Positions 4,614 through 14,455 of a stretch of 27,857 bases of DNA are shown in pieces. The first letter of the stretch is position 1. Each line of letters opens with the position of its first letter. Both the position numbers and the translations under genes were made by a program. The DNA is from Geosiphon pyriformis uo1 (Eukaryota > Fungi > Glomeromycota). The DNA lies in assembly GCA_016748015.1 (NCBI GenBank), contig JAAOMT010000038.1, forward strand, positions 24,527-52,383, in the 5' to 3' direction. The notes below the pieces were generated by a model. The model saw nothing but the letters and a program-made list of their open reading frames with translations, made no database searches and was not told the origin of the DNA.

Positions 4614-5231
4614 CTAATAGAATGGATTAAAGGCTCTTTGAGATTGGTTGGTGGGATGAATGAACACATCTTCAACTTTGTATTGGGTTCTGAAGGATAA
4701 AGGGAATTCTTTTTTCAAAGTTGAGAAATGGTGAGGTTCTTGATAGCATGTCTCTACATTCTGTTCTAATTGGGTATGAAAGTTAAATTGCTCGCTTCTA
4801 GTATTAGATTCTGAATAGTGTGAACGAATGGTTGGGAGTTTAGTCTTTTTTCGATTATTATTTTCAAATTTATTCATGCTATTCCATTGGATCCAATTTT
4901 GCTTGTTAGATGAGATAGACTTTATCTGCTCAATTATCAACAATTTTCTTGCTTCTTGTGAGAATTCATCATACCATTTCTTAACATGAGCAGGTTCATT
5001 TTTCCAAACAGAACCAATCACTTTTGAAATCTCTGTCATTCCTGGCTTGAATCCTTGCTTCTGTAGTTCTCTTAAATATTGGCCTCGATAAATAATGAAT
5101 CCGTTCTGAGGTTTTACCAATTTTTGGCTATTCCTTTTCTTGTGGATGATATCGGATGCCTGAAGTTGTGGTGGGAAAGGCATGTTTATTTTCATATTTG
5201 AAAAGCTGGTAGTTGGCTCTTGAGCTTTCAT
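4614..5231 (-). CDS. MATA_HMG-type HMG-box transcription factor, 205 aa
   Basis: HMG box at aa ~39-100 (nt 4932-5117): VKPQNGFIIYR...MTEISKVIGSVWKNEPAHVKKWYDEFSQEARKL, matching the P-x-N-x-F-I-x-Y-R, ISK-x-x-G-x-x-W and K-x-x-Y signatures. It is preceded by PFPPQLQASDII, a leader resembling that of arbuscular mycorrhizal fungal HMG proteins. Uninterrupted ORF from an ATG. Confidence 0.92.
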   Translation of the reverse strand: MKAQEPTTSFSNMKINMPFPPQLQASDIIHKKRNSQKLVKPQNGFIIYRGQYLRELQKQGFKPGMTEISKVIGSVWKNEPAHVKKWYDEFSQEARKLLIIEQIKSISSNKQNWIQWNSMNKFENNNRKKTKLPTIRSHYSESNTRSEQFNFHTQLEQNVETCYQEPHHFSTLKKEFPLSFRTQYKVEDVFIHPTNQSQRAFNPFY

Positions 5232-10228: not shown

Positions 10229-11785
10229 TCAAAAGCTCTGCTGCGGTTTTTCCTGCCTCCTTTTTTCATATTCAAGCCATTTACGAATTGCAGTCCTCGT
10301 ACGTTGTGGTTTAGGCACAGATATACGTCGCATCATAGTAGATACTGAACCTTGTGACATTTTACAGGTATTATTCGAAAGTGCAATAATTTCACTAGCG
10401 ATTTGAGCTTGAGTACATTTTGGGTTTTTAAGACGAGGACCAGCATATTTAATAAAATCATCTGTAAGAGCATTCTCTTCCATGGTTAGTGGTTGTGGAG
10501 AATAAGTGCTTTTCGTTACATCATTCCACCATTTAGATGCTGAGGTAGTCTGATGTGGAAGACCATTCAAGAAAAAGCTCTGTAATGTGGGCCCCTGTCC
10601 ATTGTTTGATTTATCTGACGCCTCACCAGAATTCGAAGATTTTGGGGCTTGAGCTATTGAAGAGTCAGAATTATATTGATGAAATATATTGTGTGGATAG
10701 TGTGGGAATGTAAATTGAAAATCATTTGAATTTCTTTGATTATTGTTATGCTTTTGGTTTTGTTCTTTTTGATATGGTTCAAATCTATCCTTAGATTTTG
10801 ATGTAAAATCTTCACTCTTGCTTAATCGATGAAAAGTTGAGGAAGATCTTTTAGTCAAAGAGTTTGATACTTTTTGGCATTTGTTTATTTGACCCATGGT
10901 GTCCCAAAAAGAGTAGATAGGAGGTGGCATGTGGTTGTGTTGTGAGCGATTAATAGAACGACCGTGAGAGGAAGAATTCATTGGTGTTGAATGAGGTTTT
11001 TGATTGGCCGGCCCCAGAAATTCTTTGTGTGAGGAGGAATCCATCGCACCTGATCGCACAGGTGATATGGTGTCTTGCATTTTTTTCATGTCAATCGCAG
11101 TTGCCATATGAGACTTTTTGGTTTTTCTATCAAATCTAGCGGGAAATTCTGTTTCAAGCAGAAAATTTTGATTTTTTCGACCACTCCTTACATCGAAGTC
11201 GCTTGATGATTGAAGTGAAATCTCATCTTCAGTTTCTGAAAGATCAACACCTTGTTGAATGTCATATGCAGACTGTGATGACTCAACAATTTGCATAAAT
11301 TCATCTTCAAGATCTTCATGTTCAGAAGAAGAAGAGATCGTTACGGTTGGGCTTTGACTTCTCTTTCTTTTTTCCTGATTTTTATCTTGTTCATAAAAAC
11401 TTTTTACAAAAAATTCCCGCTGCCAGTCAAGAGTTGAACTTGTAAAGTTGTTTGAGAGATCCGTGGGTATTTGTATGCACATATCTTTTGGGAGAAGTTT
11501 ACGTAACTCCTTAACTTTTTGGGAAGCATTTTTTAATGTCTTGCTGGCAAGTTTAAAGGCCTTTCCTGCCTTTGCATAAGCCTCTAAAACCTTTTGAGGA
11601 TTAAAAATTGAGGAGAATTTTTTTGGAATTATATATTGAGAAACGCAAAACTCGTTCTCATTTTTGATAATCTGATAGACTTTTAATTTCACTTTCAAGA
11701 GCGAAATTTCAAATAGCCATACCTCTTGTGTTTTTTCCACAATGTATTGCTCTTGTTCAACCTCAAGCAATGAAGAGTCGCTCAT
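10229..11785 (-). CDS. Putative transcription factor (~518 aa) with C-terminal lambda-repressor-like HTH domain resembling POU-specific/CUT domains
   Basis: A 1.56-kb stop-free ORF in very AT-rich DNA; the first ATG is at 11785 (the track start 11806 is TTG). Architecture: N-terminal helical region (LEAYAKAGKAFKLASKTLKNASQKVKELRKLL), basic NLS-like KRKR, acidic tract, long S/N/Q-rich disordered region, then DDFIKYAGPRLKNPKCTQAQIASEIIALSNNTCKMSQGSVSTMM...AIRKWLE (nt 10271-10468). ORF reality is well supported; the domain call is by eye. Confidence 0.85.
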   Translation of the reverse strand: MSDSSLLEVEQEQYIVEKTQEVWLFEISLLKVKLKVYQIIKNENEFCVSQYIIPKKFSSIFNPQKVLEAYAKAGKAFKLASKTLKNASQKVKELRKLLPKDMCIQIPTDLSNNFTSSTLDWQREFFVKSFYEQDKNQEKRKRSQSPTVTISSSSEHEDLEDEFMQIVESSQSAYDIQQGVDLSETEDEISLQSSSDFDVRSGRKNQNFLLETEFPARFDRKTKKSHMATAIDMKKMQDTISPVRSGAMDSSSHKEFLGPANQKPHSTPMNSSSHGRSINRSQHNHMPPPIYSFWDTMGQINKCQKVSNSLTKRSSSTFHRLSKSEDFTSKSKDRFEPYQKEQNQKHNNNQRNSNDFQFTFPHYPHNIFHQYNSDSSIAQAPKSSNSGEASDKSNNGQGPTLQSFFLNGLPHQTTSASKWWNDVTKSTYSPQPLTMEENALTDDFIKYAGPRLKNPKCTQAQIASEIIALSNNTCKMSQGSVSTMMRRISVPKPQRTRTAIRKWLEYEKRRQEKPQQSF

Positions 11786-14455
11786 TTTTTTTTTCAAAGT
11801 AGTCAAGTTAATTTTTATTACAAAGGGGACTATTATAGATTTAAAACAAAATGTAGTTATAATTTTGGTTCAATTTCAAAGGTTAAAAAGCAAAACGTTG
11901 AAAGTAAGAATTCTTTGGAATCTTGGAAGAGCTAGCGAAAAGCAAAAAGAATTATTGAAAGTGATATAAACAGCGTTCACAAAAACTATGGTGGCCAGTC
12001 TTGTTCCTATAACCTGGTTTTATGATTTCTAAATATCATTTTAAATTAGTAGTATATTATTTATATGTGAGTCTATGAAGATTCCTTGAAAAAGTGATTT
12101 TAGATATACTATGATCTTCAACTGTCTGTTTAGCAAAATAAAAGCTCAATGGGGTTTGATTTTAACTAGTTTTGACAACACAAGTGTTAGGAGCTAGACC
12201 GAATAAAATTTTGTGATTGCGCCAATTGTATGCATTTTCAAGTTTCCAAAATGAAAGTTGACATGAGAGTTAATTTCTGAAGAATTTTTGTAATAAAAAT
12301 ATATATTAAATTTCCAATGAATTTTCAACAGAAATTTCATTTTTTTTGTAATTTTTATTTGCTCCGCGCGCTCAAAGTAAAAAATTCAATAAACTTTAGT
12401 TTTAATAATTACAAGTATATGTTTTATCGAGTGGCTGTTTTGTTTTTTTTAAGGCTGTGGGTCGGTTTTTGATTGCCACTTTCAATAATCAATGAAACAG
12501 ATCTTTAACATATTGGTCAAAACTTGAATTATATATTTTTTTGAGGCTTTACTCAAGGAAAATCTTTTTTAAGTATTCATAAATACTTAATAAATATTCA
12601 AGATAATCTATTTCCCAATATTTTTATTTGATTGATTTAGTATATTTTTTTTTTAATTTTTCAAAAATTTTGGAATTGGATAAACATTCAAAAATTATCA
12701 TTGATTCCATATTATTAAAAAAAAGGGTATTGTTCGCTGAGAAATATATATTTTAAAATATTAAATATTATACAGCATAAAAGTTTTTTGATACCAGATT
12801 TTTTCTTGAGAAATCAAAATTATACTATAAAAATTATCATTTTATAAATGTTCGTAGTTCACTGTAATAGACTAATCAATCAATCAATCAATCACTAGGT
12901 AGTTATCACCGAAATTTTAATTTTCCTATGGTATCCCCCGCGTAGCAACGCAAAAAAAAAAAAAAAAAAAATTTGTCTTGATTTTCCTATGTCAAAAATT
13001 TAATTTTTTCATTAATTTTCCCGTTCTAATCCAAAGACAGTGATTATTATAATTATTAATATTAATATTGAGTTAAGAGAGAGAGCATTACCTGTACAAA
13101 AAAATTTTTTTTATGTATCAAAATGCGGCCAATCAATTTCACATAATTATGAAATCTAAAAATAATTGATTTGCTAAATTGGTGATCTTAAAATTCTTTT
13201 GCATAAGAATTAAATTTCCTTGAAAAGGAACACAAGCCCGATAATTTGGGTGATAAAATAATCTTATATTCAAATTTTAAATTTATATATGTCCAAAATG
13301 ATACATCACTGAGCTCATACACAATAGGTATTTAAACCAAAAAAAAATAGATTAAATTCTTGGGATCAAATCTCTTAAAAATATCTTATAGAAAGATAAA
13401 CGGAAATTTTTTACAGCTGCATTATACTTTGTATGGAAACAGGCACAGTGAGTCTAAAAGAGAGTAACCTATATTTGGTAAAAATAGGATCAGGTATAAA
13501 GAGAATGGGATTCAGTTTAAACAACAATAAAAATTTATTCGAATAATGAGAGAAATTAATCATTCTCTGTTTCTATCTTTCTTTATTTAAATTTTTATAT
13601 TATTAGAATCATTTACATTTAAATTATAAATAAAATTCTCAATTATCCAATTTTTCCTTTCACATGAATTGATAAACTGATAAAATTATTATTATTATTA
13701 TTATTAAAATGTAACCAAAAAAAAATTCTAATAGTTTTTATTATAACTCCGTGGTCAAAACCCATTGTCGTAGGTGTTTGTTATAATAATAATAAAAAAC
13801 TTTCCAAATTTATAAATGTGAAAATTTATTAAAGACTTTTGATATCAGTTACACGACATATAAAGATAAGTAATACTTAGTATAAATGGTAATATCTATT
13901 CTTGTATATACATTTCATTGAGGTAGATGGAATTCAAAAATTTCCTAAAATTTTCTTTTAATCAATGAACCATGATTGCATAGAATTGGCGTTCGTTGTG
14001 CAACATACTCTTTGTCTATGCTACCTTTTTGGAAAAAAACAAGAATCTTTACTTTTAAAATGCAATGCCTAATTTTTTTCAATCATGCTTTTTAATGAAG
14101 ATTGTTTCTTAATGGTCAAATGACGACAAATGACCAAATTATGATGAAATAAAAGGTATACTGATGTTCATTGAAAGGTTTTATTATAAGATGAAGATAT
14201 CTGACTTCTTTTTATTTGTTGCTTTTGAGATAAAAGTTGAATTATTGGTCAAATTTTATATATATAAATTTTAAAAATTTTAAGATGGGTTAATTTTTTT
14301 TAAAAATTAGCAAATTTAATATATAAGTTGAAAAAGAAAGTTTAATATATTTCAAAAAATTAGTTTTAGGGTAACTAATTTTTAATTATTCTAAAAAGTT
14401 ATTCAGTCTATTGATTTATATCTAATTTTAATATCGTTTTTTTTTTTTTTTTTTA

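Follow-up and report, generated by a model that had tools for sequence, protein, structure and literature searches.

The described helix-turn-helix (HTH) systems closest to the gene considered here are the POU-specific domain (POU-S, PF00157) of Oct-1/Oct4, Pit-1 and Brn-5/POU6F1, the POU-S-like N-terminal domain of HNF-1 (PF04814), the CUT domain (PF02376) of the CUX, ONECUT and SATB proteins, and the XRE-type domains of bacteria and phages (Cro/C1, HTH_3, PF01381) together with eukaryotic MBF1. In POU proteins the POU-S domain is accompanied by a C-terminal POU homeodomain; HNF-1 combines a dimerisation domain of its own with an atypical homeodomain, and the XRE domain of bacterial repressors is usually N-terminal. 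Long regarded as specific to animals, POU factors have been reported from two choanoflagellates (PMC11564870). For fungi, a transcription-factor survey based on InterPro listed IPR000327 (POU-specific) among the domains present and recorded proteins combining a homeodomain with a lambda-repressor-like domain in 7 genomes out of 191, most of them from zygomycetes (PMC5415576); signatures resembling POU in early-diverging fungi are thus not without precedent. The stretch analysed here, referred to as the window, comprises 27,857 nucleotides of Geosiphon pyriformis (Glomeromycota; contig JAAOMT010000038.1, positions 24,527 to 52,383), and carries on its minus strand, at 10229-11785, a gene whose C-terminus had been likened to POU-S and CUT domains in an original prediction made from the letters alone. 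Few transcription factors have been characterised in arbuscular-mycorrhizal fungi, which cannot be grown on their own. The encoded protein is probably a nuclear, sequence-specific DNA-binding regulator of a new Glomeromycota family, with a basic, C-terminal, four-helix HTH domain that its model places in the XRE/POU-specific fold class, encoded by a real, spliced gene.

The spliced gene and its C-terminal domain

The gene corresponds to the annotated G9A89_003269, a 'hypothetical protein' of Geosiphon pyriformis, whose spliced product of 474 amino acids (aa) aligned as 100% the same sequence, so that the fungal host supposed by the original prediction was confirmed. The raw open frame has 525 codons (10229-11806, minus strand), with its stop codon at 10229-10231. 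Left unspliced, 44 spurious residues are read in this frame, which appeared as an insertion relative to all seven aligned relatives; an in-frame intron of 132 nt was therefore assigned. The plus strand across 10271-10468 was stop-rich. The minus-strand translation of this interval, which starts LTDDFIKYAGPRLKNPKCTQ (with L-T-D-D-F-I-K-Y at the start) and has AIRKWLE as its last residues, contained exactly the predicted spacing F-I-K-x4-R-x6-T-Q-x17-S-Q-x23-K-W-L-E, and the protein does end 13 aa past K-W-L-E. The gene and the elements of its C-terminal domain are as follows; the helices were assigned by DSSP on the structural model.

10229-11785, minus strand: whole coding sequence, with exon 1 at 11723-11785 and exon 2 at 10229-11590 including the stop codon (from the open reading frame (ORF) listing and the protein alignment)
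11591-11722, minus strand: intron of 132 nt, in frame, GT..AG, with the boundaries GTATGG...AAAAG read from the sequence
10244-10492, minus strand: predicted C-terminal four-helix lambda-repressor-like (POU-S-like) HTH, residues 388-470 (AlphaFold2 pLDDT 95-98, fold and profile searches)
10427-10483, minus strand: helix 1, residues 391-409, E-E-x-x-L-x-D-D-F-I-K-Y-x-x-x-R-L
10379-10411, minus strand: helix 2, first of the HTH, residues 415-425, starting at the Q of TQ, Q-x-x-I-A-x-E-I
10331-10354, minus strand: helix 3, residues 434-441 (Q-G-S-V-S-T-M-M, then R-R), predicted to be the recognition helix and matched to that of POU-S in HMMER alignments of relatives
10250-10306, minus strand: helix 4, residues 450-468, holding Trp459 of K-W-L-E

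The domain was modelled with AlphaFold2 from an alignment of 30 sequences and the full-length protein from seven. Residues 35-115 of the domain construct (protein residues 389-469) formed four helices with a pLDDT of 95-98, helices 2 and 3 being joined by a linker of eight residues, and the full-length model reproduced the domain helices from its shallow alignment. The HTH fold supposed from the letters was thus confidently predicted. The top 50 matches in three independent structure libraries were nearly all of the lambda-repressor-like fold (SCOP a.35/IPR010982), making robust the assignment of the modelled domain to this class, with its characteristic bundle, in which helices 2 and 3 make up the HTH.

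Over seven proteins from Geosiphon and Ambispora, 53 positions of the C-terminal block of about 115 aa were invariant, among them F, R, TQ, Q-x-SVSTMMRRI-x-VPK and W, and the C-terminal domains of the two genera were 61-68% identical. Across an alignment of 41 family members, the Trp of helix 4 was kept in every sequence, A455 and E421 in 40 each, R407 in 37 and F400 in 35, with P447 in at least 90%. The start of helix 2 was more variable (T/S in 29/41, Q in 27/41, I-A in about 30/41), and the Gln of helix 3 was kept in 27/41. In the subfamily of the window protein helix 3 was invariant and, with the following R-R, formed the most invariant stretch of the protein; in the most divergent Geosiphon paralogues its Gln was lost. 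The conservation of TQ, SQ and W anticipated by the original prediction therefore holds for this subfamily and for most of the family, but with the two glutamines restricted to the fractions just given. The common core of about 85 aa can be written E-x-x-L-x-D-E-F-x-x-Y-x-x-x-R ... (T/S)-Q-x-x-I-A-x-E-I ... Q-x-x-V-S-x-M-x-R-R-x-x-V-P-K ... A-I-x-x-W-I-x-x-E.

A chance resemblance in a non-functional or mis-annotated frame would agree with the sub-threshold scores of all matches to known families, reported below. This explanation is effectively refuted by the invariant positions shared by two genera, by the confident fold prediction and by 25 paralogous loci free of stop codons.

A multigene family of Glomeromycota

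The relatives returned by a word-based search were two paralogues in Geosiphon and four proteins of Ambispora. In the Geosiphon genome, a profile of the C-terminal block detected 13 loci and a broader profile of 30 sequences at least 25; in nearly all of the 25 loci the domain lies at the extreme C-terminus of one long open frame. Among 1.84 billion cluster representatives, the C-terminal-block profile found 33 at E<=1e-3. All the named members belonged to four orders of Glomeromycota: besides Geosiphon and Ambispora (both Archaeosporales), they came from Entrophospora, from Dentiscutata and Gigaspora (Diversisporales) and from Rhizophagus (Glomerales), in agreement with the fungal relatives that had been expected. 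The members without an organism name were short metagenomic pieces carrying the family motifs. No homeodomain or other Pfam domain was detected in the ten family members checked, the longest included, and the absence of a homeodomain noted in the window protein thus extended to every member examined. A literature search found no paper describing a homeodomain-free Glomeromycota family of this kind. As judged from sequence comparisons, this is a previously undescribed, lineage-specific multigene family that has no Pfam model and that, among named sequences, is restricted to arbuscular-mycorrhizal fungi.

Being invisible to Pfam-based catalogues of transcription factors, a likely family of DNA-binding regulators would be missed in the current counts for Glomeromycota. 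Counting 25 or more genes in Geosiphon and represented in four orders, it suggests itself as a contributor to lineage-specific regulation, that of symbiosis included.

Some of the Geosiphon loci (L016, L021, L031, L033, L024, L026, L028, L027, L034, L029 and L030) were arranged in tandem clusters:

contig 634, 661-685 kb: four loci
contig 621, 6-38 kb: three loci
contig 666, 465-471 kb: two loci
contig 612, 67-96 kb: two loci

The members of these clusters were strongly diverged, and many lacked the Gln of helix 3, yet they kept the Trp of helix 4 and the P after helix 3. The picture suggests a regulator family in which new members arise locally and diverge fast. In two proteins, P0008 (Entrophospora sp., 1049 aa) and P0021 (Geosiphon, 805 aa), the domain profile matched two separate stretches each; these may have two HTH copies, or may be gene models that fuse tandem neighbours, P0021 lying in the contig 621 cluster. 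That the family stems from a transposon or a virus was considered and found unsupported, with no transposase, integrase or other domain in the members examined.

Relation to POU-specific, CUT and XRE domains

Among solved structures, those nearest to the modelled domain were POU-S and HNF-1. The best seven Foldseek matches in the PDB were all POU-specific domains (probability 0.94-0.96, E about 0.3), followed by HNF-1A, HipB, cI, the SATB2 CUT domain, MBF1 and C.Esp1396I. A second scan, independent of Foldseek and covering 48,161 PDB representatives, was also led by Oct4 (7.3), Brn-5 (7.3), Oct4 (7.2) and HNF-1A (6.8), with a designed DNA binder (6.6), an XRE protein (6.4), the MuB N-terminal domain (6.3) and many Cro/C1-type domains next and the SATB1 CUT domain at 4.8. 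The expectation that POU-type structures would be the best solved matches was therefore correct, and the family offers a eukaryotic HTH that lacks a homeodomain and has POU-specific domains as its closest solved counterparts. The shared features are the four-helix lambda-repressor-like fold, an extended helix 2 and a long linker between helices 2 and 3; the pattern of helix 1 and the invariant Trp of helix 4, which HTH_3/XRE domains are not known to have, also favour a shape of the POU-S type.

In the sequence searches, no match attained significance. The whole window protein gave no Pfam match above cut-off, and none to the Pou model at E<=10; its C-terminal piece reached E 0.082 and 13.4 bits with CUT. 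The gathering scores of the models are 27 bits for Pou, 24.4 for CUT and 23 for HTH_3. When 30 members were compared with Pfam, every match was sub-threshold: Arg_repressor in 5/30, and Pou, CUT, HTH_31, HTH_3, LacI and SoPB_HTH once each, the Pou match being the metagenomic member P0029 (18.8 bits, E 0.0016) and the HTH_3 match scoring 14.4 bits. PF04814 (HNF-1_N) gave no sequence match, so that none of the four families named for comparison in the original prediction was recovered above its cut-off. Across the whole Geosiphon genome the Pou and CUT models had zero matches and HTH_3 matched three loci, none from the present family, which we take to be MBF1-like genes. PHROGs and NCBIfam returned weak, scattered matches, with phage repressor families at E 0.005-0.007 for one member each.

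Against PDB sequences, the window domain alone yielded leucine-rich-repeat noise only, and the profiles of 7, 30 and 41 sequences yielded RGS, ferritin-like and CYP51 noise, with POU6F1 once at E 0.68. The top match of P0029 alone was the POU-S domain of Pit-1 (E 0.0038), and that of a 12-sequence subgroup profile was the POU-S domain of POU6F1 (E 0.025), narrowly before ArgR (E 0.033). Both POU alignments covered all four helices with gaps of 1-2 residues, aligning T-Q, S-Q-x-(T/S)-(I/V)-S and the invariant Trp with the Trp of K-W-L; P-K was aligned in POU6F1 only. These matches are suggestive, but not significant after correction for selection, because the best of about 40 members was chosen and several searches were run. 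ArgR itself was rejected as a relative, since Arg_repressor is a winged-helix family, the predicted four-helix bundle has no wing and ArgR never appeared among the structural matches.

Could the family nevertheless be a specific relative of the animal POU-specific/HNF-1/CUT group, closer to it than to bacterial XRE domains, and thus the surviving standalone form of a module that was fused to a homeodomain in animals? We regard this as possible but doubtful. In its favour, the structural alignments were longer with POU-S (67-78 residues) than with XRE (57-67), reflecting the common long helix 2 and its linker to helix 3; Pit-1 and POU6F1 were the top PDB sequence matches; and a language-model feature search with the window domain placed onecut CUT, Pou and HNF-1_N first (0.84-0.80), under the 0.9 trust line of that method. 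Several points weigh against it. Every one of these signals fell under the significance line of its method, the full family profiles found no POU in the PDB at E<0.6, and ArgR and the phage XRE repressor families scored in an equal range. Predicted phage HTH structures matched by Foldseek (E 0.03-0.3) as well as or better than POU (0.3). For the divergent member P0009, the clusters nearest in the language-model search were unnamed, from phages or bacterial, HNF-1_N coming fourth, and its Atlas structure matches were bacterial and phage HTH_3 proteins, so the CUT/POU ranking fails for this member; the margin over XRE structures was small in any case. The silence of the Pou and CUT models across the genome and the restriction of named members to Glomeromycota point the same way. 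A specific POU link, if true, would bear on the origin of the bipartite POU domain. Still less probable are two particular histories: a POU-S/HNF-1-type module that was independent in early opisthokonts before its tethering to a homeodomain and was lost by most fungi, or a POU-S domain captured from an animal by a mycorrhizal ancestor.

Differences from the described systems can also be read in the protein itself. Sequence identity was 15-21% with POU-S and 11-14% with the HNF-1 domain. The gap between TQ and SQ is 15 residues in Pit-1 and POU6F1 and 17 in the window protein, where the signature R-F-E is replaced by T-M-M. The partner of POU-S is a homeodomain, whereas the C-terminal HTH of the window protein, in a fungal host, has a long N-terminal helix as its partner element. 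With CUT domains there is a local S-Q-G-S-V-S ... P-K-P in and after helix 3; the likeness, as far as sequence goes, is confined to this motif of one subfamily, CUT was not the closest fold and its Pfam model matched 1/30 members below the cut-off. Bacterial and phage XRE domains and MBF1 have a shorter HTH turn than the window domain, the HTH_3 model misses the family, and the C-terminal position of the HTH differs from the usual one in bacterial repressors. On these models and comparisons the domain is POU-S-like in shape and not a demonstrated POU or CUT member, because the scores stay below the model cut-offs, the homeodomain is missing and CUT is not the closest fold: of the relatedness originally proposed, the POU-S-like shape held, while the sequence scores stayed sub-threshold and phage and bacterial XRE models matched about equally well.

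The residues of POU-S helix 3 that contact bases are Q44, T45 and R49 (PMC11564870). As read from HMMER alignments of relatives, Q44 corresponds to Q434 (27/41), T45 to a Gly in the window protein (Ser in 12 and Gly in 11 of the 41 members) and R49 to a Thr in its subfamily, with Lys/Arg in 26/41 members. An octamer half-site is thus an unlikely DNA target for this subfamily, given the Gly and Thr at the T45 and R49 equivalents.

A bacterial or phage origin was weighed as well. Glomeromycota harbour endobacteria, and an XRE-type HTH might have been acquired by their ancestor and then expanded and diverged, leaving the POU-S likeness as convergence. The confinement of the family to one fungal lineage would fit such an event, as would the predicted-structure libraries (Atlas and viral), where XRE/HTH_3/HTH_60 proteins of bacteria and phages were matched with target-based TM values up to 0.69-0.71 and an rmsd of 2.3-2.6, and the Q-x-x-I-A-x-E-I of helix 2 is reminiscent of Q-x-x-L-A in XRE domains. 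We nonetheless consider the acquisition unlikely: no bacterial or phage protein was found at E<=1e-3 in the exhaustive profile search, where the unnamed metagenomic matches carried the fungal motifs, the HTH_3 model matched only the presumed MBF1-like loci of the Geosiphon genome, the genes have a fungal composition, and the window gene has a spliceosomal intron. If there is no POU link, the family would clearly exemplify convergence towards an extended, POU-S-type HTH inside the XRE superfamily.

Proposed mode of action and surroundings of the gene

The full-length protein was predicted to have three parts, namely an amphipathic N-terminal helix of about 50 residues, a disordered linker of about 300 residues with a cluster resembling a nuclear localisation signal, and the C-terminal HTH. 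The features outside the HTH domain were:

11495-11776 (intron inside), minus strand: predicted N-terminal long alpha-helix, residues 4-53 (AlphaFold2 full-length, pLDDT 79-88)
11465-11494, minus strand: LP-x-D-M-C-I-Q-(L/I)-P motif, residues 54-63, right after the helix, with L54, P55, M58, C59, I60 and P63 invariant
11360-11371, minus strand: basic cluster KRKR, residues 95-98, with K95 and R98 invariant in seven proteins
10580-11458, minus strand: low-complexity linker, predicted disordered, residues 66-358 (pLDDT about 30; 43% S/N/Q/T/P)
10682-10708, minus strand: FPHYPHNIF motif within the linker, kept between Geosiphon and Ambispora
10493-10579, minus strand: residues 359-387, an extension specific to the subfamily and N-terminal to the HTH, SFFLNG-x-P-H ... 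A-S-x-W ... Y-x-P-Q-P-L, invariant in seven close relatives

Hydrophobic residues recur in the N-terminal helix at a spacing of 3-4 (V22, Y26, A29, F33, A36, L40, A43, V47, L50 and L54), and K18, T19, E21, V22, A25, Y26, A29, K34, A36, L40, V47, E49 and L50 were invariant in the seven proteins. From this spacing the helix is a probable coiled-coil pairing element, through which two chains would pair, and the dimer would read a two-part DNA site with its paired C-terminal HTH domains, helix 3 (Q-G-S-V-S-T-M-M) and the following R-R being inserted into the major groove. KRKR is a candidate nuclear localisation signal. DNA binding is made plausible by the basic character of the HTH domain (pI 10.0; family median 9.0) and by the helix-3 Gln and helix-2 Thr/Ser-Gln kept in most members. 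The same fold could serve instead as a protein-protein or RNA/ribosome interaction module that does not read DNA, like MBF1 or the MuB N-terminal domain, but we hold this to be very unlikely, given that nothing in the protein is more invariant across the window protein's subfamily than the predicted recognition helix and R-R, that the domain is so strongly basic, and that a pairing helix, a disordered linker, a basic cluster and a terminal HTH would together be typical of transcription factors. Regulation through sequence-specific DNA binding in the nucleus is thus the reading we prefer.

The middle of the linker (about 300 residues) could not be aligned between relatives, short motifs excepted, and disorder spanned residues 66-369 in the full-length model. 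The 29-residue extension before the HTH was missing from the wider family and was modelled with low confidence (pLDDT 45-59). For the FPHYPHNIF and LP-x-D-M-C-I-Q-(I/L)-P motifs, which both lie outside the predicted domains, no search pointed to any function.

The window as a whole is AT-rich (GC 16-35%) and gene-poor, with three ORFs of at least 100 aa in 27.9 kb; the HTH gene occupies its GC-richest kilobases. About 5 kb downstream of this gene, a second ORF encodes an HMG-box protein:

4614-5231, minus strand: 205-aa ORF, HMG-box protein (Pfam HMG_box E 6.2e-9, 36.6 bits; MATalpha_HMGbox 25.1 bits, under cut-off)

The proximity of an HMG-box gene to a POU-S-like gene echoes the Sox-POU pairing of animals. 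Since mycorrhizal fungi have large HMG-box expansions, this proximity is probably a coincidence.

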